Source of the DNA: Podarcis bocagei | Taxonomy: Eukaryota | DNA: 64,000 nucleotides | Strand: one strand, 5' to 3' | Assembly: GCA_964188305.1 (NCBI GenBank) | Contig: OZ076892.1 | Shown here: in pieces, positions 9,161-57,935 of the stretch | Layout of the letters: each line of letters begins with the position of its first letter | Numbering within the stretch: the first letter of the stretch is position 1 | Notes under the pieces: generated by a model | Databases searched by the model: none | Told to the model about the DNA's origin: nothing | The model's input: the letters and a program-made list of their open reading frames with translations, nothing else | Program-made: the position numbers and the translations under genes

Positions 9161-12100
9161 AGGTCCTGGCAGATGCAAGCAATTGAATTCTCAAAATGCT
9201 TTGCAAACAGGACACAGCAAGCTACTATTGGTTTTACCACCTCCTTCAGGCCGAGTGTAAGAGGCACAACACTACCCAGAAAATCTCTGCTGGATTGCAC
9301 AATGAAGATGCAATGGAGGCAGCAAAGTATGACTTCTTTGTTGCCTTCACTGCCATTGGGTAGACTCAATGATGAGTCCTCACCAAAGTTTGATTGCATC
9401 GGGTTGGATTTTTCCTTCACTCGGGTTTGAGCCATCTGCCAGCTTGTTTTCTCTCCCTAAGTTCTAGGGTATGCCAGGGAGCCAAATAGGCTCCAGGAAA
9501 TGGGAGAGGGTGCTCAAGGGCAATTGTGTCAATAGCCTGAGCCATCCAGATGTTCCATGCTGGCTGGGGCTGATGGGAGTCCAGCAACATATGAATGGTA
9601 CCAGGTTAGGGAAGGCTGGTCTAAACAAAAAAAGCCCCCAATGCCTTTCCTTGTTGAAATGGGACTCCACCCCTATTCTCATTTGGCTTGGCATTTTCTG
9701 CACCTTTTCTACTTCCCAGACAACCGCAGTGACCCACAAATCCAAAGAGAGCAACAAGGACTAGGAAGAAGAGGGCAGTCGGGCTATATTGAACAGTAAG
9801 TCCTTTGCCTGCAGGCTTCTAGTTAGAAATTATTGTCTGCAAACAGACTTAGCCTGGTTGAAATCAATGGGATTTAGATAAATAGTTGGATGCATTGATT
9901 TCAGCAGGTGCCCACAGTGCAAAACGCAGAGCTTCCACATCTGAAAGATTAGCAGTGTGCATTCATTTTGGAACTAATGAAAAATGGAATCAATTGGGAC
10001 TAGTATTCAGTTTTCAGCCACCCCAAAACAAATGAAATGAGCGAGTACAAATGGGTGCGTGGGTATGTAGTTCTTTGTTCCATTTAGGGATTGGGGTGTT
10101 ACTTTACACTGGTGACTGTGGAGCTTTTTCATCAACTATTTATTTTTTGATATATAGCTTTCAGGCAAGCCTCTTGAAGTACTGAATGTGGGGTTTATTT
10201 GTGATGAGTAGGAGAATGCAGCCACCATGGAAAAGCCCATTTCCTAGGCCTGCCAATCAAATAAAATTGAAAGTGGGCTTGTGAGCAAGCTCTCCAAAGC
10301 TGATCTCAGGTTCCAGGGAGGTTCATATGGGTGCAAATAAACTGCTACAAAATAATTGAAGGCAAGGATGAGGAACTTGCAGTCCTTCAGTTGATGTTGG
10401 ACTACAACTCTCATAATCCTTGACCAACGACCGTACTGGTGGGGACTGAGAGGAGTTAGAGCCCAGTCACATATACAGGTAGGTGGGGGCAGGTTCCTCA
10501 TCCCTGGTTTAGGGCTTCAAGTGCCATTGCTGGGGCGAAGATGAATGTATTTTTCATTGATCATTAACAAAACAAGATGTTACACGGACACACACAAAAA
10601 TCGTCACAATTTTATTTAAAAAGCAAATGTGGTGTTTAGTAATTAAAACGCTTGGGGTAATGAAACCATCACTATAAACTATTTAATGCACAAACGCTGG
10701 AGAGTGAAACCAATTTACTAAATGAACCCTTCATTTCTCTCCCTGCCCCCTGTTTCATTTGACCTTAGTAAATCCACCAAAGAACAAAATGAATCTGCTT
10801 TCCTCACTCACATATTTATTTTTAAAACCTATATTTTGCTCTTCATTAGCAGACCCCAGGGTGGGTTACAACAATAAAATACATAATAACCAAATATTAA
10901 AATCAAATTTAAAAACCACACCTTCTTAGTTACTGAAGGCCCGTGTCCCAGGGACAACATATATCAAAAGACCTGGTGAAAAACAGCCAAGGAAAAGAAA
11001 AGAAGACGTTTGCAGCTGCCATCTAAAACTGAGCACAATTGTCACCAGCTGGATCTCCAGGGGGAGTGCATCTTACAGTTGGCGTGTGATAGCTTAGCAG
11101 GCCTTCGTGAACCCTTTCACCACTTTCTGCTCCTAAAAAAAAAGAGGGCTGAAGATATGTTGCTTCCATCCTCTGCAACACACAGGCTGAAGTTCAACTG
11201 GGATGAAGAAAACATGGACTGGCCCGATTGATTGGCTAAGACAGTGGGACTCTCTACCTCCCAGGCCGCTTGCTCAGGTGGTCTGAATCTGCTACAAGCA
11301 CTTGGCGTATGTTTCATTGACACACTTGGAAGTCCTCTAGGCATCCTGGAAGAAGATGTAGCTGTAGCTTTTTCCGAGGGTTCCTAAATAAATAAAAGCT
11401 TGCACATGTTAATTTGGTTCCAAGAGACGTTCGCGTTGGCCTCCTGCAACAGTGCAGCCTCTTCAAGAACACTGTCTTAGTTCATAAGTGTCTGGGATCA
11501 TAGACTCTGCCCTCTTCATCTCCCTTTTAGAGTTAAAAATTTATGGCTCCACAGATGGGCTACTCTGAGCAAACCTCTAATCTCTTTTGCTTGGGATGGT
11601 TCATTGCATCAAGAAGCTGCTAAAACGGAAAGGCTACATGGGGAGGAAAGCAGCTGTCTCCATCGTCCGGCACTGCTTGGAGTGCGTAATTACATAACAC
11701 CCCCTTGCCTGAAGTTTATGCTTGACTGCAATCTATATAACCTTTTTAAAATTAATCTTGTTTCTCCCTCCCTCCCCATGCCCCCACTTCTCTCTCCGTC
11801 TCCCATGCACACAGGCATGCACATAAATATAGCTGTCGAAATTCTAGGGAGAAAATGCAGTTTTGGAATTTATTGGGATTTGTAGCCTGTCTCATCCCTA
11901 AAGCTCAAAGCAGGCAACACTAATAGGTTAGTTAAATGAAGTAAATGAATTCAATATGAAAATTCTAACACCGTGGCAGCTTAATGCTACCCACCAAACA
12001 ACCCTCCAAGCCAAAAGAAAGGAAAAAAGGAAAGCCTTCCTATTTTGGAAAATGTATGAACCACTTGATCAAAAAGTTATCAAGGCGCTATCCAAATCAA

Positions 12101-13329
12101 ACCAAGGACAAGGCACAGCTATGACAGGCAGGTCGCTTGGTTGCAGTTTCCCACACTATGATGGGAGGCATTGTATTTCTGTTTAAATTCATTCATCCAT
12201 TCATTCATTTCAATGGGTCTACTTTGAGTAGAACTTAGGTCACACCCACACCATACATTTAAAGCAATTTCATACCATATTAGCATTCACGGTGACTCCT
12301 GGGAACTGTAGTTTAAGAGTGTTGGGAATTGTAGCTCTGTGAGATCAGCATCCTTAACCATCGACATTTCCCAGGGGTCTCCAAGACTTTCTTTGTGAGC
12401 CCATGTGCTAACCCCAAGACTTTATTTAAAGGCATAAAAGAGTGCTCTAAGTGTATGGTAGAGCATGGAGTAGGATCCATAGTACTTACTTCTAAGTACT
12501 AAAATACTAAGCATTTTAATATAGATTGGCATCTATATTAAAACACACAATTTTATGAAAAACTGGGTATTCCTTTTTGGTGGTGCATAAATAACCACCT
12601 TAACCCCAACTGTGGAATTCTCCTCCCTGCGAGCTGCATCTGGTCTCTTCAGCTTTTTACTTTCCACCGTCTGCTTCTATTTACTTATTTATTATATTTA
12701 TTATTCACCCCATAACTCAGTCCTATGGGCAATGTGCAGGGAATTTGAAATGAATCTTAAAAGACAAAAATACATAAAGCACCACAATAAAACCTGCAAC
12801 CAGCAGAGAGAATAAGATGGTCCTTTTTAGGCCAACCTTTTTATTAGCTAGTGGCATGACTTTATGCTGACTGTGGGGTTTGGGAGTCATCGGAAGGTTT
12901 TATCAGTCTTGATTTACCATCATTTTAAAATTATTATTTTTTTAAAAAAACTTTCTATTTGTAAATAATGTTTAACCACGGTTCATCTATTTCCCCACTC
13001 CTAAGAAGCAAACATAGCATAGCAAAAAAAAAAAATGTAGTCAGTAACAAAATAATCAGAGCACACACATGAGCCAGTTTCTACAGCACATACAGTAACA
13101 GCAGTGTCGTTCCTGCCCATAAAGTGTGTTAGGAACCAATGATAAATAAAACATGGCCCAGTGGAAACTTTTGATAGTGAAAGTGAACTACAGAGCTCTG
13201 TCAGAGACAAGGCAGGGGTAGACAATTTGCCCCCCTCCAAATGTGGTTGGACTACAACTCCCATCAGCCCTAGCCAGGGTAGCTGATTTTATTTCTTGCA
13301 TTATTTTTATTCTGACAATTTACATACTG

Positions 13330-17271: not shown

Positions 17272-17537
17272 AGAGATGTGAGAGTTTGTCAATTTCAGTT
17301 TCTAGTTTTCCAAGTTCACTTCTCCACATTTCACATTCGTTTGTGATATTTTAAAAACAAAGGTCTCGTGAGAATTCAGCAGCATTTTTTGTGTGAATTT
17401 CTCCTAATATTTTATTATATTGCAAATCTCAGAGAGGTGTGAACTTCAAAGAACAGCTGTGTTGTTCTTTGAAAGTGCAAATTGTTTCAGAAAGTGCAAA
17501 GTAAATGCAGACTGAATAGAATTTCTCCCTCATCCCT
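17272..17537 (+). mobile_element. Abundant AT-rich MITE-like repeat with AG(G/A)GATG...CATCCCT ends
   Basis: Shared motifs TTCTCCACATTTC, ATGAAAATTCA(T/G)CAGCA, GAATTTCTCCTA. Related copies at about 2050-2255(-), 31254-31410(-), 42860-43280, 44160-44560, 55690-55930 and 59628-60716. Confidence 0.7.
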
Positions 17538-18762: not shown

Positions 18763-19309
18763 TTTTTTGCTCTGGTAATCCCTCCCGCCTGCTACAAAAT
18801 CACTGAGATGAGCTTCCACTTAACCATCTGCAAACACAGGAACATAGGAAGCAACTTTCTACAGTGTCAGTCCATTGCTCCACCCAGCTCAGTGTTGTCT
18901 AGGCTGACTGGCAGCAGCTCTCTGAGATATCAGGCAGAAGTCCTTCCTGTGCTCTACCTCACACTGCAGAATGGTGGAGGGGATTTCCCTTCAACCCTTC
19001 TTGGAATAGCTGCAACTGCTTGTTGGGTGCTCATTCTTTCTTCCAGGATTTTCTGTAGCAACCGAGGAGCAAGCATAGCTCACTGGAAGAACATATGTGT
19101 TACCAGCAGAAGATTGCAAATTCAATCACAGGCACCTCCAGTTGAATAATGAACAAATAGCTGCTGGTGGGAAATACCTCCATCTATCTAAGACCTTGGA
19201 GAGCTGCTGCCATTCAAAGTTGGCAGTGCTGGCCTAGACAGGCAAATGTCCTGGTCTGAAGGATGCAAGAAGCCATATCATTCACCATTCTATCCTATAT
19301 TCGTCACAC

Positions 19310-22188: not shown

Positions 22189-23518
22189 ACACTTTCAGAA
22201 ATTTTGAAAACTTGTGGGTTTTTTTAGGGGGAGGAAGAACAAAGGCAGCATGGAACCCTTAGACCACATCATAGTTTGTAAGTACTTTAACATAATTCTG
22301 GGTGGATTTATCATGAGTTTCCATTAAACATGCACGAGGAAATGGGATGGGATGGGGCAGCGCTAGTTCTATCTTCCCTGAGAACTGGACTTCAGTGGGT
22401 CCATCCATCTCTATTTCTGAGTCTGGGAAATATTGATTCTGGTGCTGCTAATTGAATGGGGAAGGTTGGTAGCTGGGTAACCTGCCTTTCAGGAGGTTTG
22501 CCACCACTGCTGATATTCTTATTGTGAAATTCCTGAAGAACTTCAGATGAACTCTGGGGCTCCCTAGAACACCACTGGTCTGCATGATCTCCGTGGCATA
22601 TCATTAGTGTTTCCAGAGGCACCAGCAGGACCAACACAGCCAGGAAGGCTTTCTGTGCTGCTACAAACAAATTTATTGTGGCAGAGTTACAGGGGCATCC
22701 ATCAGTTGGGAATCACTGGTGCCTTTGAGAGGAACATCTGCCTGGACTTTAAACTCCTTTATTCATTACAAATCAGGTGTCCGCCCCTGATGAGCTCACA
22801 GCTGTCAGATGTAAGCTTATTGGGCTACTGCCGGGCTAGTGTCAGTGGTGGCTTATTAAGCAGATGAAGATATATATTCAAAAAGCAGAAGGTGCAAGCT
22901 GTTTGCTAACCAGATAAGGGATGGCCCCTGCAGAAAAAGACCGAATGGGAGACAAGACTGATGACTGAACTTCCTGCCAGTAGAACTGGGTTATTGTCTT
23001 TTCATACTGCACAGAGAGCCTGATGATTCCACGAGGCATCATCAAGGAAGTAGTAGGCATCAACCAGCCACATACTCACAAGGACAAAGCAGGCCACTGG
23101 TTTCACAACACATGTAACTGTCAGCATCATCTTAGAATAATAGAACCGTCTCATTGAACATTCCTGCTTGATGCAGAAAATTGAGAACTGGAGCACCCCT
23201 AGCTGATGCCTGCCCAGTCTCTGCCTGAGGACTTCCAATGCAGGAGAACTCCGTTGCCCCACCCCTGTAATGGGTCCCATGGTCTTCTGAGGGTGTTTCA
23301 CATAACCAATGTGTAGCTATTCTTTCCCAGATGGCATTATACATCACTAGTATGAAGGCTTGGGAAGAAGGGCACAACATTTTTGTGTGTTTGCTACATT
23401 TATGCACACACACATACATAGATACTGTTTTCTCTTCCCTTATATAGTTTTTCTCCCGACTCCTATTGGACAGGGTGGATCCTGTAATGAAAGAGGGCAA
23501 CCAAACACTGTAAGTTCC

Positions 23519-23533: not shown

Positions 23534-24519
23534 CAGAGAACAAGAGGCCACCAGGGGTTTGGCACTGCAGGTGCCTTGGGTGCAGTGGCAGAAAGTCGCT
23601 GCATAATCATAGCAAACAGATGAAAAATCCATGCTTAGCCAAACAAACCTTCATACTCTGATTACAGGACTCTGGCCTGTTTTTGTTTATATACACTGTT
23701 TTCTCTTCCCTTATATACTACTTCTCCCAACTCCCCATGGTACATGCCTCTTTCTCGATTACCTTCTGGCCTGTTAAACTTCTTTGTTGTCCTCACAGAG
23801 GCAGTCCAAATTTCTTCTGTTGTTCACCTCTTTGCCCTCCCCACTGTAAACCTCTTTCAATTTCCCCCCAAACTTTTTCTAGGTTTTTGGTATGTATTTA
23901 TGTGCTGCTGTTTCACCCCCCATTGGCTATAGTGAGGAATCGAAAACCAGTATATAACATTTTTTTCTGCATAAGTGGATGGACTCCATCCTCCTGGGTG
24001 GAATAAGTCTGTCAAATTTCTTAAAAATAATAAATCCCTTACTTTTCACATCCTGGAAGCACCCGTCATGACATAAAAAGTGAAAGATCTATGATTTTTA
24101 CTTGTTAGGAAAACATAAATATTGGGAAAGAAACTGGTTGCCCTAATAGTCCACTTACACCCTCCTGTGACAGCCAAAACGCAGAGGATAATGATGAGCC
24201 ACATGAATTAAACCTCTTTTTATTGACTTCAATATGCCTCCCTCAAAACACTATGACTGGAAGGACTCAGAAAATAATTCATTGTTACAGAAAGCCGGAC
24301 CCATCTGTCAGAACAAAAGATTCCCCACTTCTCCACCCCTCTTGGGCTCTAGGCATTTCTCTTGTCAGTTTGGTTTCATTTCTCAGAGAAAAGGGCCATG
24401 ATTTTAATGTTTCGACTTGGAAACTTAGTGGGGTCATTGGTCTGCCTTAAGACAACCTGCTTTGGAAACATGAAATCATGACCCAAATCACACCAATTTG
24501 CCTCATTATTCAAGATACA

Positions 24520-27675: not shown

Positions 27676-28663
27676 GCAGCCTTACAGCCTGTCTGGGCTT
27701 CCTGGAGAGACCATGTGATGTTGCATGGTTACTCCAAGAAGCCTTGCCAGGCTGGGATCATGTCTGCAAAGAGTCCTGCACCACTTTGAGCAACGATGGG
27801 ACTTAAAGAAAAGTTTGTACTAATTGAAAAGAACCTTCAGCTGTCTTGCTCAGTTCCAAAGCTGTATGCACACATAATGCCCTGTCCCTTGACATTTGTA
27901 TGCTTGTGTGTGAAGTTCTCCCACTCCCTGTGAAAGGTGCAAAGAAGTCCTGCTTTTGTAGGGAGAGGAGATTGTAGGGAGGAAAATAAGCAAGTGGGGT
28001 TCAGCCTAATATAAATGGCAATAGTGCATGCATGTGAATAAAAGAGAAATCTGAGAACTAGTAATTGATCAAAGGAGGAATGATAGAATACTTATGCAAT
28101 CAACCCCAGCCACAGCAGTGGAATTTATTTTCTTTTGCTGGTGATCTGGAAGAAGGGGAGTCAGCTCCCTCCTCAGTCTGCCCCCCACCCAAGTCCTCAG
28201 GCCACCCTTCTATCTTTTATAGACAGTGCCCTCCCTGTAAGTTTTTCAAGTTATTCTACACCCAGAATCAGCCACTAGCTCATTCTTTTTATTCATTTCC
28301 CCCTACACTGGTGAAAACTACAAAGAATATATTTTTTTGGAAGAAGAATCTCTGGTGAATTAGAAAGCAATCACTGCAAATTAGAATTTGATGAAACAAT
28401 AAGTCTCTTTATTAAGCCGTTCCAGGCTCATAGCTTAAAAAAACTCCTCATTTGTTGCTGGCTTCTAGGGAAGGGTTTAATCTTTCCCCTTCTTTATTTC
28501 ATTTTCTTTTGTTGCAAAGACATTTGCACACTCAACATTTTACCCCTTGCCTGTGGCAAAAAGAGGTAATTATGGCCTAGGCTGGGGCATGTGAGGCCTC
28601 AGCAAGCGATGCTGGGATTCCTGGAAAGACCTTGGCTTGGGATATTGGAGAATCTAGACCTTG

Positions 28664-29238
28664 GCATCTAGATCAAGGGAAGTAATAGTGCCACTGTATT
28701 CTGCTCTGGTCAGACCACACCTGGAGTACTGTGTCCAGTTCTGGGCACCACAATTCAAGAAGGACATTGACAAACTGGAACGTGTCCAGAGGAGGGCAAC
28801 CAAAATGGTCAAAGGCCTGGAAACGATGCCTTATGAGGAACGGCTAAGGGAGCTGGGCATGTTTAGCCTGGAGAAGAGGAGGTTAAGGGGTGATATGATA
28901 GCCATGTTCAAATATATAAAAGGATGTCACATAGAGGAGGGAGAAAGGTTGTTTTCTGCTGCTCCAGAGAAGCGGACACGGAGCAATGGATCCAAACTAC
29001 AAGAAAGAAGATTCCACCTAAACATTAGGAAGAACTTCCTGACAGTAAGAGCTGTTCGACAGTGGAATTTGCTGCCAAGGAGTGTGGTGGAGTCTCCTAC
29101 TTTGGAGGTCTTTAAGCAGAGGCTTGACAACCATATGTCAGGAGTGCTCTGATGGTGTTTCCTGCTTGGCAGGGGGTTGGACTCGATGGCCCTTGTGGTC
29201 TCTTCCAACTCTATGATTCTATGATTCTATGATTCTAT
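28664..29238 (+). mobile_element. Young CR1 LINE, 5'-truncated 3' end (ORF2 C-terminus plus 3' UTR)
   Basis: Uninterrupted ORF ...[38 protein letters not shown]...[14 protein letters not shown]; (ATTCTATG)n tail. Confidence 0.97.
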
Positions 29239-48192: not shown

Positions 48193-49073
48193 ATTAGGAA
48201 CCCCACACATACCCCTCCTTAAAAAAAGTAGATTGTTCTGTAAAGCATTTCCAAATTAAGTCTATTTGTCTGGATGGAAAGAAGCATAATAGTCAAGACT
48301 CTTCATCAACAGTCTGACATATGTTAAACAGGAAGGTAGTCAATTCTTTGATGACAGGAAGTAGCTAGCCAGTCAGCAATTTGACAGATAACTACAGAAG
48401 GCAAAAGTGTGGTCTGCACCTTGATGGGTAAAACAATGATAAGCAACAGCCTGGCACATTATGATATTACAAGTTGAATAAGAGACAGCAGTGCAATACA
48501 ATAGCACATTGAATAAGAGACAATACACATTTCATAGAATCATAGAGTTGGCAGAGACCACAAGGGGCATCGAGTCCAACCCCCTGCCAAGCAGGAAACA
48601 CCATCAGAGCACTCCTGACATATGGTTGTCAAGCCTCTGCTTAAAGACCTCCAAAGAAGGAGACTCCACCACACTCCTTGGCAGCAAATTCCACTGTCGA
48701 ACAGCTCTTACTGTCAGGAAGTTCTTCCTAATGTTTAGGTGGAATCTTCTTTCTTGTAGTTTGGATCCATTGCTCCGTGTCCGCTTCTCTGGAGCAGCAG
48801 AAAACAACCTTTCTCCCTCCTCTATGTGACATCCTTTTATATATTTGAACATGGCTATCATATCACCCCTTAACCTCCTCTTCTCCAGGCTAAACATGCC
48901 CAGCTCCCTTAGCCGTTCCTCATAAGGCATCGTTTCCAGGCCTTTGACCATTTTGGTTGCCCTCCTCTGGACACGTTCCAGTTTGTCAGTGTCCTTCTTG
49001 AACTGTGGTGCCCAGAACTGGACACAGTACTCCAGGTGAGGTCTGACCAGAGCAGAATACAGTGGCATTATTA

Positions 49074-50109
49074 CCGTATTTTGCGCCCCATAAGACGCTC
49101 CGGCCCATAAGACGCACCTAGTTTTTTGGGGGGGAAATAAAGAAAAAAAATTTTATTTCCCCCCACAGGTGCGGGGCTGGAAGAACCAGGTCGGGGAACA
49201 GAGGGAAGGCACGCTCTGCCTCCCCGCTGTCCCCCGAGCTTGTGGGGCTGGCGATGGGGAGAAGTGCACCAGTCCCGGGAGGGCAGGCAGCTCTGCCCCG
49301 CCATCCCGAGCGGGGCAGGACTTAGCGCACCGCTCGGGATGGCGGCGTAGACCCGCCTGCAGTCCCGCGAAGGCAGGCAGCTCTGTGCCGCCATCCCGAG
49401 CGGGGCAGGACTTAGCGCACCGCTCGGGATGGCGGCGTAGACCCGCCTGCAGTCCCGGGAGGGCAGGCAGCTCTGTGCCGCCATCCCGAGCGGGGCGGGA
49501 CTTAGCGCACCGCTCGGGATGGCGGCGTAGACCCGCCTGCAGTCCCGCGAAGGCAGGCAGCTCTGTGCCGCCATCCCGAGCGGGGCAGGACTTAGCGCAC
49601 CGCTCGGGATGGCGGCGTAGACCCGCCTGCAGTCCCGCGAAGGCAGGCAGCTCTGTGCCGCCATCCCGAGCGGGGCAGGACTTAGCGCACCGCTCGGGAT
49701 GGCGGCGTAGACCCGCCTGCAGTCCCGCGAAGGCAGGCAGCTCTGTGCCGCCATCCCGAGCGGGGCAGGACTTAGCGCACCGCTCGGGATGGCGGCGTAG
49801 ACCCGCCTGCAGTCCCGCGAAGGCAGGCAGCTCTGTGCCGCCATCCCGAGCGGGGCAGGACTTAGCGCACCGCTCGGGATGGCGGCGTAGACCCGGGATT
49901 GCAGGCAGCTCTGCACAACCCTCGGAGCCGGTCTCCCGAGGGTTGTGCAGAGCTTCCTGAAGCCTGGAGAGCGAGAGGGGTCGGTGCGCACCGACCCCCC
50001 TCGCTCTCCAGGCTTCAGCGAAAGCCTGCATTCGCCCCATAAGACGCAGGCACATTTCCCCTTCATTTTTGGAGGGGAAAAAGTGCGTCTTATGGGGCGA
50101 AAAATACGG
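49074..50109. mobile_element. Non-autonomous Tc1/mariner-superfamily (pogo/Tc2-like TIR) transposon, 1036 bp
   Basis: TIRs CCGTATTTT(G/T)CGCCCCATAAGACGC; TA duplication at 49072-49073 and 50110-50111; subterminal CCCATAAGACGC repeats near 49104 and 50036; no transposase coding. Confidence 0.93.
49271..49894. repeat. GC/CpG-rich 90-bp tandem array (~6.9 units), each unit with a 17-bp inverted repeat
   Basis: CTTAGCGCACCGCTCGGGATGG... recurs at 49321, 49411, 49501, 49591, 49681, 49771 and 49861; arms GCCGCCATCCCGAGCGG / CCGCTCGGGATGGCGGC. Confidence 0.97.
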
Positions 50110-51385: not shown

Positions 51386-52994
51386 AGCACTGTTTTCCTG
51401 TGGCAATTGTGTGCCATTTGGAAGGCTATTTTATGGAGACGCTTAACTGTCACATAGCTATAAACTTGTGGCCACTGGGATAGTTCTCCTATAACAAGCC
51501 CTTTAAGAGACATTTGATTAATTGATTAATTAGCAAGCGATCAGGCTTACCCAAATCTTATGAAAAATCTTGGATTTTAAAATAAATTTAAAAAATAGAT
51601 GAAGCAAACTCGCAAGTGATGCATTATAAACCCTTGGAAGTGTGAAAGAAGATATTAGAGGAAGTAGCCACTAATCCCACTCACTTTAAAGTCAAATTTA
51701 ATACGCAGTCTTGTAATACTGGGCACTCTCCATTACCTTGAAGAAGGACTAATAACTATTGATATAATGTGATTGTTCTGCCAAGCTGCAAAGGGAAGTA
51801 GATTGTTGCTGTGGAAAGCACTTGGCAAACATAGTTTCAGAAAGCTCCTGGATGAGTGGAGTTCAGAAGCTCCTTTCAGAGTGCTATCTTGCACTGTTCA
51901 AAGGCACTGCCTCATACCTGACATCATAGTCATAGAATTGTAGATTTGGAAGGGGGTCCTGTCCAATGCCCTCCAATGCAGAAACTACACCTAAGAAATC
52001 CCTGGCAGATGGCCAGCCAAACTTTGTTTCAAAACCTCCACACATCTGTCTGTGAGCTGTAGACCACGTCAGTTTAGAATTTGCAAAGAAAGAATTTCTG
52101 TTTCACACTCATTCCTAAATCCTTACCCATTGTGCCACCAAACCTTCCTAGAAGGTTAAGGTTGTGAAGGAATGCACCTTGAAAATATTGGGTTTCACTG
52201 AACAATTACAAGAACCTCAACCCAACATTATTATTTTCAGGGGAAGGGATGTGGCTCAATAGCACAGCATCTGTTTTGCCAAAGATCCCAGGTCCAAACC
52301 CCAGCATGCCCAGGTGAAGTTTCCAGGTCCAAAGCTGGTCTTCTTGATTTCAAAAATGGACCAGTGTGTTTTAAGTTTAGGGATTTGGCTCCATCTCTTC
52401 TTCAACTACTACCACTTAAATTTTGGTTCAGAAAGTACATAGACAACTAAACTTTTAACAGCCAAGGAGAAGGATGCATCCTCTGGCCTTCCTGTTGGGA
52501 ATCTTTCTGGTTGCAATCGCTTTGCAGACAGCAGAGTATAATGAAAAAGAATGCAAGGTGAGGCAGTGAGCTTGGGAGCAATTACCGAGATCGCCTGGCA
52601 GTCCATTTGATCGGACTCGTGTTCACCCTCCCTGCCCATTCCCTGGTATCTTTTCCCAGGCAATACATTTGGAATTAAGGACAAATTGTAATTACTTTCG
52701 TTGGTAATGAGAGCTTCTGAAGAAAAAGAAAGTGATAGATTCCAAATTTTATCAGAGCTGACAGGGAACATTATTTGTGTTGCATTAGTACTGGCACATT
52801 GTCAAACTTGAAAGGCCCTAAAGATCGCTTCCCTCCTGCTCTTCCCTACAGGGGAAGAGTGGTCAACCAAGGCATTCACAAAACGAAACCTAGAAATGAC
52901 AGACACTACCCTTGCTTCACGAGAAACCCATGCAGGTCTTTATTCTGAACAGGGAGGGACAAATGTGTCAGTTTCAGTTTCTCATCTTTCCTTT

Positions 52995-53388
52995 AAAAAT
53001 ATATATATATATTTCTGTTATTCCATTTTATAATATTCAACAATGAATGTAAATCCACACAAATTCAAGAATGTTTTCTGTGACTTTCCTCCCTTCCGTT
53101 CTGCAGTTTGTTATTTTTCTATCATATTCTTACTGCGTATCCAAATTTACCCTTTTTACCAGTTTATCCTTTTTAATTCCCTTAGATTTCTTACAGCTTG
53201 TGTTTATTTCAACGTTTTCAAATGTTTACAGTTTGTTTTCATATATTCAATAAATTTCCCCCATTCTGCTACAAAACATTTATCATCTTGATCTCTTAAT
53301 ATTCCGCTAAGTTTCACCATCTCTGCATGTTCCATCAGTTTTAGTTGCCAATCTTTTTGGGGGGTCAGTTCCTCTTTCCAGTTTTGTC
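52995..53388 (-). mobile_element. L1 LINE ORF2 C-terminus plus 3' UTR (decayed)
   Basis: Minus strand reads WKEELTP..DWQLKLMEHAEMVKLSGILRDQDDKCFVAEWGKFIEYMKTNCKHLKTL, typical of squamate L1 ORF2 ends; A-rich UTR and AT-rich tail. Confidence 0.75.
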
Positions 53389-53489
53389 CACATCTTTAAT
53401 CTCCATGGAGAGATCTACAAGTGTTTCAGGGGGTTCCAGTTCTGGGTCTAAAGCTGTTGAGTCATTTAATGTAGCCAATATCCATCTGC

Positions 53490-53853
53490 GAGAGTCTTTG
53501 TATTGACTTGTGGCACCCTTCAGAATGGGATTTATATCACAAAGTTCCCATATTTGCCATCTCACTGAAGGAGGGAAAACCACTGGATTTTCAAATTTCT
53601 CTACCTACTCATACCTTTGCAACATACTTATGACAAGCCGGCAGGAGTTTACTCGGTTGCTGCTGATGCTTCTCTGATTCCTGGATGATACATTCAGGAG
53701 AGAAGAGCTCCTCAGAGAGTCTGGCCAAATGTTCATCCATTTTCTTCACCATCTCCTTCTCTATCTCTTTCCCCTCATTCACCAGGCACTTCTCTTCATC
53801 CTCCAGAAACTGATGCACTTGTTTCCTTATCAGTTCCCATTATTTTAAGAAGC
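53490..53853 (-). pseudogene. Processed (intronless) TRIM pseudogene fragment, RFP/TRIM27/TRIM39-like coiled-coil and linker
   Basis: LLKIMGTDKE/fs/QVHQFLEDEEKCLVNEGKEIEKEMVKKMDEHLARLSEEL..QQPSKLLPA/fs/VISMLQRYE*VEKFENPVVFPPSVRWQIWELCDINPILKGATSQYKD. Two frameshifts and a stop codon; segments that are normally separate exons are contiguous. Confidence 0.85.
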
Positions 53854-53983
53854 TCTCATCTTTCCTTTCCTGTGTTTTCTCTATGTAACAGCATAGGAGC
53901 CAACCCCAGGGGGTCATGGGTGCCTGGGCATCCACAATAATATAATTGCAAGGGCCAAGCACCCACAAAGTCATTGAGAAAAG

Positions 53984-57197: not shown

Positions 57198-57935
57198 TGT
57201 GTTGGCATCCATCTGTCTTGGGAGGCAATGGAAGGGTAAAGTCAAACCTATGGGAAGTTACAGCACCTGCTGTGGCTGTAGAGACCAATATGGGAGAGGT
57301 ATGTTTTATTGCAGGTGGGGCAGACGAAAGCATCCAGTCTTGCTGCTACAGGTGCACCATGGTGTTTCTTCTCTCTGCCCTCCTTCCAACGGTCATTCAT
57401 CCTCTGGTCACTGCTATGGATGCACGGCCTGACTGTATCCAGGCACTGCAATCAAATGCAAGGGATTCTCATACAGTGGGGTACATGTTGCCAGCCTTCA
57501 TGTCACATTTTCAGACATCCTTGTAACACAGAGTAGGTCTGTCAACAGCCCTAGGGCCTGAAGCCAGCTCCCTGTAAAGCATGTCTTTGGGGATCCAGCC
57601 ATCTTCCATTCTGTGTACATTACCAAGCCAGCACAGACGTTGCTGAGACAAAACTGTGAACATGCTGGGAAAGTGGGCTTTGGAGAGCGCATATTGGTTT
57701 GAGACTCTGTCCTGCCATGTGATGCCCAAAATCTTCCTGATGGACCACATATGGAAAGCATTGAGGCATAGCTCTTGGTGGTTGCAAGTTGTGAATGAGT
57801 CACTTCTATAAAGCAGCATGCTCAACACACAAGCCTGGTAGGCTTCCATCTTGGTGTTGGTTGTTAGCATCACATTCTCCAATACCCTTTTGCAGAGGTG
57901 AGCCATTGTCGTAGCTGCCTTGCCAATATGCTTGC
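57198..57935 (-). mobile_element. RTE-clade LINE 3' part (decayed)
   Basis: TKMEAYQACVLSMLLY..IRKILGITWQDRVSN..QQRLCWLGNVHRMEDGWIPKDMLYREL..GPR...RP.LCYKDV; C-terminal zinc finger FVCPTCNKTYLSHIGLYSH. Confidence 0.9.

Follow-up and report, generated by a model that had tools for sequence, protein, structure and literature searches.

A putative TRIM/L1 chimeric retrocopy enclosed by one 15-bp direct repeat in the lizard Podarcis bocagei

The insert and its boundaries

In the lizard Podarcis bocagei, a stretch of 64,000 nucleotides of contig OZ076892.1 (GenBank assembly GCA_964188305.1), here called the window, contains an 859-bp block at 52995-53853 that combines sequences of two kinds. Read along the minus strand, a fragment of a TRIM gene is followed by the 3' end of an L1 long interspersed nuclear element (LINE), and the block is enclosed by two copies of the 15-mer TCTCATCTTTCCTTT, which have the form of a target-site duplication. 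An initial annotation of the window had proposed a chimeric retrocopy at this place. It placed the exact 15-mer pair around 859 bp and gave the minus-strand order as TRIM coiled coil and linker, a segment of ~100 nt without assignment, the C-terminus of L1 open reading frame 2 (ORF2), the 3' untranslated region (UTR) and an AT-rich tail. Both the repeat pair and the order of the TRIM and L1 parts were recovered in the present analysis.

For comparison, six loci were fetched, one from Rhineura floridana (L001; CM057607.1) and five stretches of the TRIM cluster of P. muralis (L002-L006, of which L002 and L003 are taken from OZ076955.1). The Rhineura protein P0001 and the P. muralis gene for P0129, located in L003, served as the main references. 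The insert comprises the following features, given from the 5' to the 3' end of the element:

53854-53868, no strand assigned: target-site duplication copy at the 5' end of the element, exact 15-mer
53847-53853, minus: probable last 7 nt of TRIM exon 2, with CTT before exon 3
53639-53846, minus: TRIM exon 3 (coiled coil), 208 nt versus 231 in P. muralis
53615-53638, minus: TRIM exon 4, a micro-exon of 24 nt, with ~16 of 23 nt matching 13042-13064 of L003
53496-53614, minus: TRIM exon 5 (linker), matching residues 264-300 of P0001 by BLASTP and exon 5 of L003 by nucleotide alignment
53463-53495, minus: TRIM exon 6, a 33-nt micro-exon with the same length and position as in L003 and L001
53389-53462, minus: first ~74 nt of TRIM exon 7 (start of PRY/B30.2), matching residues ~310-332 of P0001 and the exon start in L003
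53386-53397, minus: TRIM/L1 junction zone, in which the alignments with L003 (TRIM exon 7) and L002 (L1) overlap
53204-53386, minus: last ~60 codons of L1 ORF2 (53386-53207) and the TAA stop (53206-53204), frame open, BLASTP E 1e-13
53015-53203, minus: L1 3' UTR of ~190 nt, by weak nucleotide alignment to the L1 3' UTRs of L002 and L003
52995-53014, minus: AT-rich tail of 20 nt, read directly as A3(TA)nT5 in the sense of the element
52980-52994, no strand assigned: target-site duplication copy beside the 3' tail of the element, exact 15-mer

The 15-mer occurs exactly twice in the whole 64-kb window, and the count stays at two when one mismatch is allowed. None of 100 shuffles of the sequence yielded a pair, and none is expected by chance. 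Moreover, the pair cannot be extended at either end. It is one of seven exact direct repeats of at least 15 bp with a spacing of 100-1500 bp in the window; the remaining long direct repeats are units of tandem arrays or scar-like traces of other insertions. Thus, a single exact pair, unique in the window and within the 10-20 bp of a LINE-type target-site duplication, surrounds the chimera as a whole. The 859-bp insert has no second copy elsewhere in the window. Furthermore, its flanks match nothing else in the window or in the fetched Rhineura and P. muralis loci, and no paralogous empty site was present there.

The TRIM fragment and its exons

A phmmer search of 1.84 billion representative proteins with the 76-residue open stretch at 53839-53612 (minus strand) gave 57 matches, the best of them to P0001 (E 2.5e-19), and none of the 57 exceeded 57% identity. 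Eight of the matched proteins, including the best one, were scanned for domains; a B-box was found in all eight, a RING in seven and a PRY and/or SPRY domain in five. The alignment falls at residues ~185-250 of the matched TRIMs, which correspond to the coiled coil. In their source records, the matched proteins carry names such as RFP-like and TRIM41-like, and they come from Rhineura, Gekko and Hemicordylus. A second open stretch in another frame (53604-53368, minus strand) aligns by BLASTP with residues 264-332 of P0001 (E 9e-17), spanning the linker and the first PRY residues (LDP...LS..K.V). At the DNA level, exon 3 is 69-75% identical to the TRIM genes of the six loci (blastn). By homology, the TRIM part is assigned to the squamate RFP/TRIM7/TRIM39-like family with the RING/B-box/coiled-coil/B30.2 architecture. 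The coiled-coil and linker identity stated in the initial annotation is therefore supported by both the phmmer and the BLASTP match. By contrast, the ~100 nt for which it had offered no source turned out to be TRIM sequence, namely exon 6 and the start of exon 7 (PRY), and the chimera consequently has two components rather than three.

Other searches returned little. Pfam gave nothing significant on three pieces of the insert, including the L1 piece, and the PDB sequence search with the coiled-coil piece returned TRIM69 alone (E 0.29). Ten open reading frames (ORFs) from the insert and its flanks had no exact record in the protein collection. The possibility that the coiled coil derives from the L1 ORF1 of a HAL1-like element was considered and rejected. 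Unlike in HAL1-like elements, the coiled coil belongs here to a TRIM, and the homology runs on through the TRIM micro-exons and the linker into the start of the PRY exon.

The TRIM part was compared exon by exon with the P. muralis gene for P0129 and, in addition, with the Rhineura locus. In the P. muralis gene, the exons concerned are all bounded by AG/GT and lie at the following positions of L003:

~11547-11777: exon 3, coiled coil
13042-13064: exon 4, 23-nt micro-exon
~17374-17494: exon 5, linker
~18806-18838: exon 6, 33-nt micro-exon
from ~20611: exon 7, PRY-SPRY

Introns of ~1.26, 4.3, 1.3 and 1.8 kb separate exons 3 to 7 in this gene. The Rhineura locus has the same exon layout with kb-scale introns at the equivalent positions (exon 6 at ~15714, with AG/GT flanks). 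In the window, the joints 3/4, 4/5, 5/6 and 6/7 are seamless. Seven nucleotides suggest a fifth spliced joint, 2/3, as exon 2 of both L001 and L003 ends in CTT, like 53853-53847 of the insert, and the intron ends in CAG. The intron loss that the initial annotation had postulated can thus be seen directly, in that the exons abut in the window and are split by introns in the P. muralis and Rhineura TRIM genes, which are paralogues and do not include the parent gene.

The fragment carries three disabling lesions, which are a 20-nt deletion near the start of exon 3 that shifts the frame, one extra base in exon 4 (24 versus 23 nt) causing a +1 frameshift and an in-frame TAG in exon 5 (53607-53605). 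Two further deletions of 3 nt, one in exon 3 and one in exon 5, preserve the frame. The coding content of the TRIM part is confined to the coiled coil, the linker and ~25 PRY codons, and thus no single open frame holds the RING, B-box, coiled coil and PRY-SPRY of a class-IV TRIM. With full-length TRIM proteins as queries, no RING, B-box, SPRY or other TRIM homology was found in the flanks of the insert within the window. The mRNA's own 3' UTR and poly(A) tail are missing as well, since L1 sequence takes over from the TRIM part ~74 nt after the start of exon 7. Since RING, B-box and SPRY are missing, as is a promoter belonging to the insert, and three disabling lesions are present, the locus has the features of a dead fragment, and the chimera is predicted to be non-functional.

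These observations also bear on the idea that no retrocopy exists at all and that the block represents genuine local TRIM exons or the DNA-level duplication of a genomic stretch. Such an origin, for which nothing speaks except the TRIM homology itself, is extremely improbable, given that exons 3-7, probably together with the end of exon 2, are fused without introns and interrupted by two frameshifts and a stop, that the coding sequence for RING, B-box and SPRY is absent from the flanks, and that the block is bounded by a duplication of the size made by L1.

The L1 end and its junction with the TRIM sequence

The L1 part was identified through an intermediate. The window stretch 53395-53207 (63 residues) is 44% identical to residues 576-627 of a 631-aa ORF in L002 (BLASTP, E 1e-13), and its second match is the L1 end in L003 (E 2e-11). 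The 631-aa ORF contains an RVT_1 domain, matches human LINE-1 ORF2p (E 5e-74) and covers one PDB chain from the reverse transcriptase to the C-terminus. The L1 assignment is supported because this P. muralis ORF links the window stretch to the human protein, and the L1 ORF2 C-terminus and 3' UTR named in the initial annotation are upheld by the same route. The 63-residue stretch itself remained blank in a word-index protein search and found nothing relevant in the PDB; F-box leads from a protein atlas (0.85) were discarded as chance. An autonomous L1 would hold ORF1 and an ORF2 with endonuclease and reverse transcriptase, and the insert retains only the last ~60 codons of ORF2.

The end of ORF2, the stop codon and the UTR of a LINE 3' terminus are all present. 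By blastn, the UTR found no match in the six loci. The tail had been described as AT-rich, which it is, but it reads A3(TA)nT5 and has no poly(A) run. In contrast, the two P. muralis L1 copies in L002 and L003 end with AATAAA followed by A12-14, and the L1 of the window belongs to a different family from these two.

Both P. muralis copies lie in or near TRIM genes. The 631-aa ORF (L002, 12086-13981, minus strand) is an uninterrupted fragment of L1 ORF2 that spans the reverse transcriptase through to the natural stop, after which AATAAA and a poly(A) tail follow. It lies in intron 3 of an RFP-like TRIM gene, antisense to it, and suggests that L1 was recently active in the TRIM cluster. The copy in L003 (23641-24290, plus strand) is an L1 3' end with the last 109 ORF2 codons, UTR and poly(A); a TRIM gene of the same orientation lies 2.5 kb upstream of it. 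From this TRIM-L1 arrangement, read-through transcripts could arise.

At the junction, the TRIM homology reaches at least 53389 and the L1 homology starts no later than 53386, with up to ~9 nt that may stem from either source. The two parts lie on the minus strand and abut directly, from the middle of an exon to the middle of an ORF. No A-run and no splice-site signature is present at the junction, and its position is not an exon boundary. Likewise, neither part has a separate poly(A) run or flanking repeat beyond chance. Two RNAs are thus represented in the same orientation, fused without any intervening tail or repeat.

Alternatively, an L1 3' fragment and a TRIM retro-fragment might have been inserted independently and come to abut, with the 15-bp repeat being either fortuitous or the property of one of them. 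The plus strand is pyrimidine-rich and short matches to the 15-mer are common, which would make a fortuitous repeat easier to accept. However, the best internal matches reach only 10 of 15 positions and the exact pair is unexpected by chance. Moreover, tails or flanking repeats specific to one of the parts are lacking, and the TRIM sequence would have had to end in mid-exon, without an A-run, exactly where an L1 of the same orientation starts in mid-ORF. We therefore consider two insertions improbable. A third, degenerate copy of the 15-mer at the junction (10/15) was rejected as chance, since six equal matches are scattered over the pyrimidine-rich insert. A further variant, in which the L1 landed inside a longer TRIM retrocopy, was dismissed because full-length TRIM proteins match nothing in the flanks, PRY/SPRY homology included.

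The testable elements of the single-event reading proposed in the initial annotation thus held, namely same orientation, direct abutment, no separate scars and no TRIM homology in the flanks. We infer, strongly though short of a demonstration, that the chimeric cDNA was inserted in a single L1-mediated event, whichever of the two routes discussed below supplied its template.

Possible origin of the chimera

LINEs are known to produce bipartite chimeric retrogenes, such as U6/L1, mRNA/L1 and similar fusions in human, mouse and rat and the MINE elements of Magnaporthe, and the signature of template-switch chimeras is a cellular RNA at the 5' end, a LINE 3' end and one pair of 10-20-bp repeats (PMC2104539). 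Judged by its arrangement, the insert with its cellular RNA at the 5' side, its L1 3' end and one target-site duplication would carry this published signature of LINE chimeras, and it shares with the bipartite retrogenes the same orientation and direct fusion of the parts. In contrast to retrogenes of the U6 type, its 5' part is not a complete small RNA but an internal piece of an mRNA, incomplete at both ends. The squamate host, the tail without poly(A) and the atypical nick site also set it apart from the bipartite LINE retrogenes. A human catalogue lists 17 mRNA/L1 chimeras, one of them shown with a 15-bp duplication, and some of the catalogued cases have been traced to splicing into L1 or to RNA ligation (bioRxiv 10.1101/2025.02.02.635956). 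Like these human chimeras, the lizard insert has spliced host exons upstream of L1 within one target-site duplication. In many human cases, however, first exons are joined to L1 at splice sites, often to long, coding-capable L1s, which suggests 5' transduction, cis-splicing or trans-splicing. The lizard piece runs from exon 2/3 to a point within the last exon, and the L1 sequence attached to it measures only ~390 nt. It further resembles an ordinary processed pseudogene in being an intron-less copy of a spliced mRNA with a target-site duplication, dead on arrival, but it lacks the 3' end and poly(A) of the mRNA, and L1 supplies the 3' end instead.

As the route of this insertion we infer, tentatively and with slightly less than even confidence, one event of target-primed reverse transcription with a template switch from L1 RNA to spliced TRIM mRNA. 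The L1 enzyme would have nicked the plus strand after ...CCTTT (52994), where target-primed reverse transcription would start. Copying would have begun at the AT-rich 3' end of the L1 RNA and produced ~390 nt, made up of the 3' UTR and the final 60 ORF2 codons. Where a few bases were common to both templates, the enzyme may then have switched to spliced TRIM mRNA, at an internal site that lies ~74 nt inside the PRY exon, and copied back through exons 6, 5, 4 and 3 until it halted after 7 nt of exon 2. The 15-bp duplication would have arisen when the staggered break was repaired. Two observations were counted in favour of the switch. The L1 frame is open across 60 codons, as one would expect had the enzyme started on its own RNA. 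Furthermore, the junction lies inside an exon, has no splice signature and shares up to 9 nt with both sources.

Four observations weigh against this proposal. First, the parent TRIM was not found among 238 squamate TRIM-family sequences, many of them from Podarcis, which were collected by two profile searches seeded with full-length TRIM and with the window fragments, nor in the six loci. Second, the TRIM part is distant from all retrieved TRIMs and yet the 15-bp repeat is perfect; protein identity to the 238 sequences is at most 57% for the coiled-coil piece and at most 46% for the linker piece, next to the 69-75% seen for DNA. The combination of a divergent TRIM and a perfect repeat fits a source that was already divergent or dead, possibly itself a TRIM-L1 hybrid. 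Third, the tail A3(TA)nT5 is not a canonical poly(A). Fourth, L1 endonuclease prefers TTTT/AA and the nick suggested by the duplication is not of this type, as it reads ...CCTTT/CCTGTG on the plus strand after 52994, with a T-run before the cut and no purines after it. As to the second point, three lesions in 466 nt correspond, by a rough estimate, to ~4-5% neutral divergence; this is compatible with an intact 15-bp pair, so that the decay may have followed the insertion.

The same facts lend weight to an alternative, in which a TRIM-L1 hybrid RNA formed beforehand, or a chimeric master copy, was retroposed once. Where a TRIM gene or pseudogene has an L1 3' fragment in or just after its last exon, such an RNA could result from read-through, cryptic splicing or ligation; in the master-copy version, the insert would be one 5'-truncated member of a small L1-dependent family. 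A drifting, non-coding source would explain at once the two frameshifts and the stop in a sequence far from annotated lacertid TRIMs, and the repeat that is nevertheless perfect. Moreover, L1 3' fragments do occur in or near TRIM genes of P. muralis (in intron 3 in L002 and 2.5 kb downstream, in sense, in L003), the tail differs from the usual L1 poly(A), the nick site is likewise unusual, and some human mRNA/L1 chimeras arose by splicing into an intronic L1 (bioRxiv 10.1101/2025.02.02.635956). On the other hand, the junction is off the exon boundary and has no donor or acceptor signature, and no relatives came to light among gene models, as identity to the coiled-coil piece stays at or below 57% in all 57 matches. 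Neither the window nor ~145 kb of the P. muralis TRIM cluster contained a second copy, although this is far too small a sample to argue against a family. Taken by itself, this origin is a serious possibility, which we hold to be somewhat less than an even chance, and the template switch is favoured over it only slightly.

In a more specific form, the chimera could belong, as a 5'-truncated copy, to a lineage of lizard retroposons with a body derived from a TRIM transcript and a 3' end derived from L1. Such a lineage would account for a TRIM part far from annotated TRIMs beside perfect insertion scars and, if real, would represent a host immune-gene fragment amplified by L1. We regard it as unlikely.

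Surrounding repeats and implications for squamate L1

The window contains traces of other mobile elements. A second exact 15-bp direct repeat, CGCCCCATAAGACGC, at 49084-49098 and 50033-50047 encloses 934 bp with a GC-rich 90-bp tandem array. This pair looks like the target-site duplication of the array element, which lies directly beside an ORF ending at 49068. The latter (48604-49068, minus strand, 154 aa) differs at only two of the shared residues from the ORF at 28661-29152 (plus strand, 163 aa). Both resemble what we take to be the C-terminal end of a CR1-type LINE reverse transcriptase, and their near-identity would suggest a young, recently active family. Exact repeats at 667-683 and 946-962 (17 bp, spacing 279) and at 23424-23446 and 23695-23717 (23 bp, spacing 271) probably flank two short insertions of the size of short interspersed nuclear elements. 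A further ORF at 57511-57906 (minus strand, 131 aa) presumably represents the C-terminal region of a non-LTR (long terminal repeat) reverse transcriptase of a family that is neither L1 nor CR1-like. Dispersed repeats of the window are 88-94% identical to the P. muralis loci and 68-84% identical to Rhineura. In the Rhineura locus (L001, 2001-56065), the gene model XP_061469465 (1006 aa) fuses two complete tandem TRIM genes, running twice from RING to SPRY.

Since the fragment shows no sign of function, the biological consequence of the insertion is probably nil. Chimeras made by mammalian L1 and by a fungal LINE have already been documented; a report of such a chimera in a squamate was not found in the literature searched, and the kind seems not to have been described there before. 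Cleanly delimited and mapped in full, the locus suggests that a single insertion by squamate L1 can combine the element's own RNA with a host mRNA, and it adds a data point on the shuffling of host sequence by reptile L1. A comparison of the orthologous site across lacertids, where feasible, could also turn the insertion into a dated marker.

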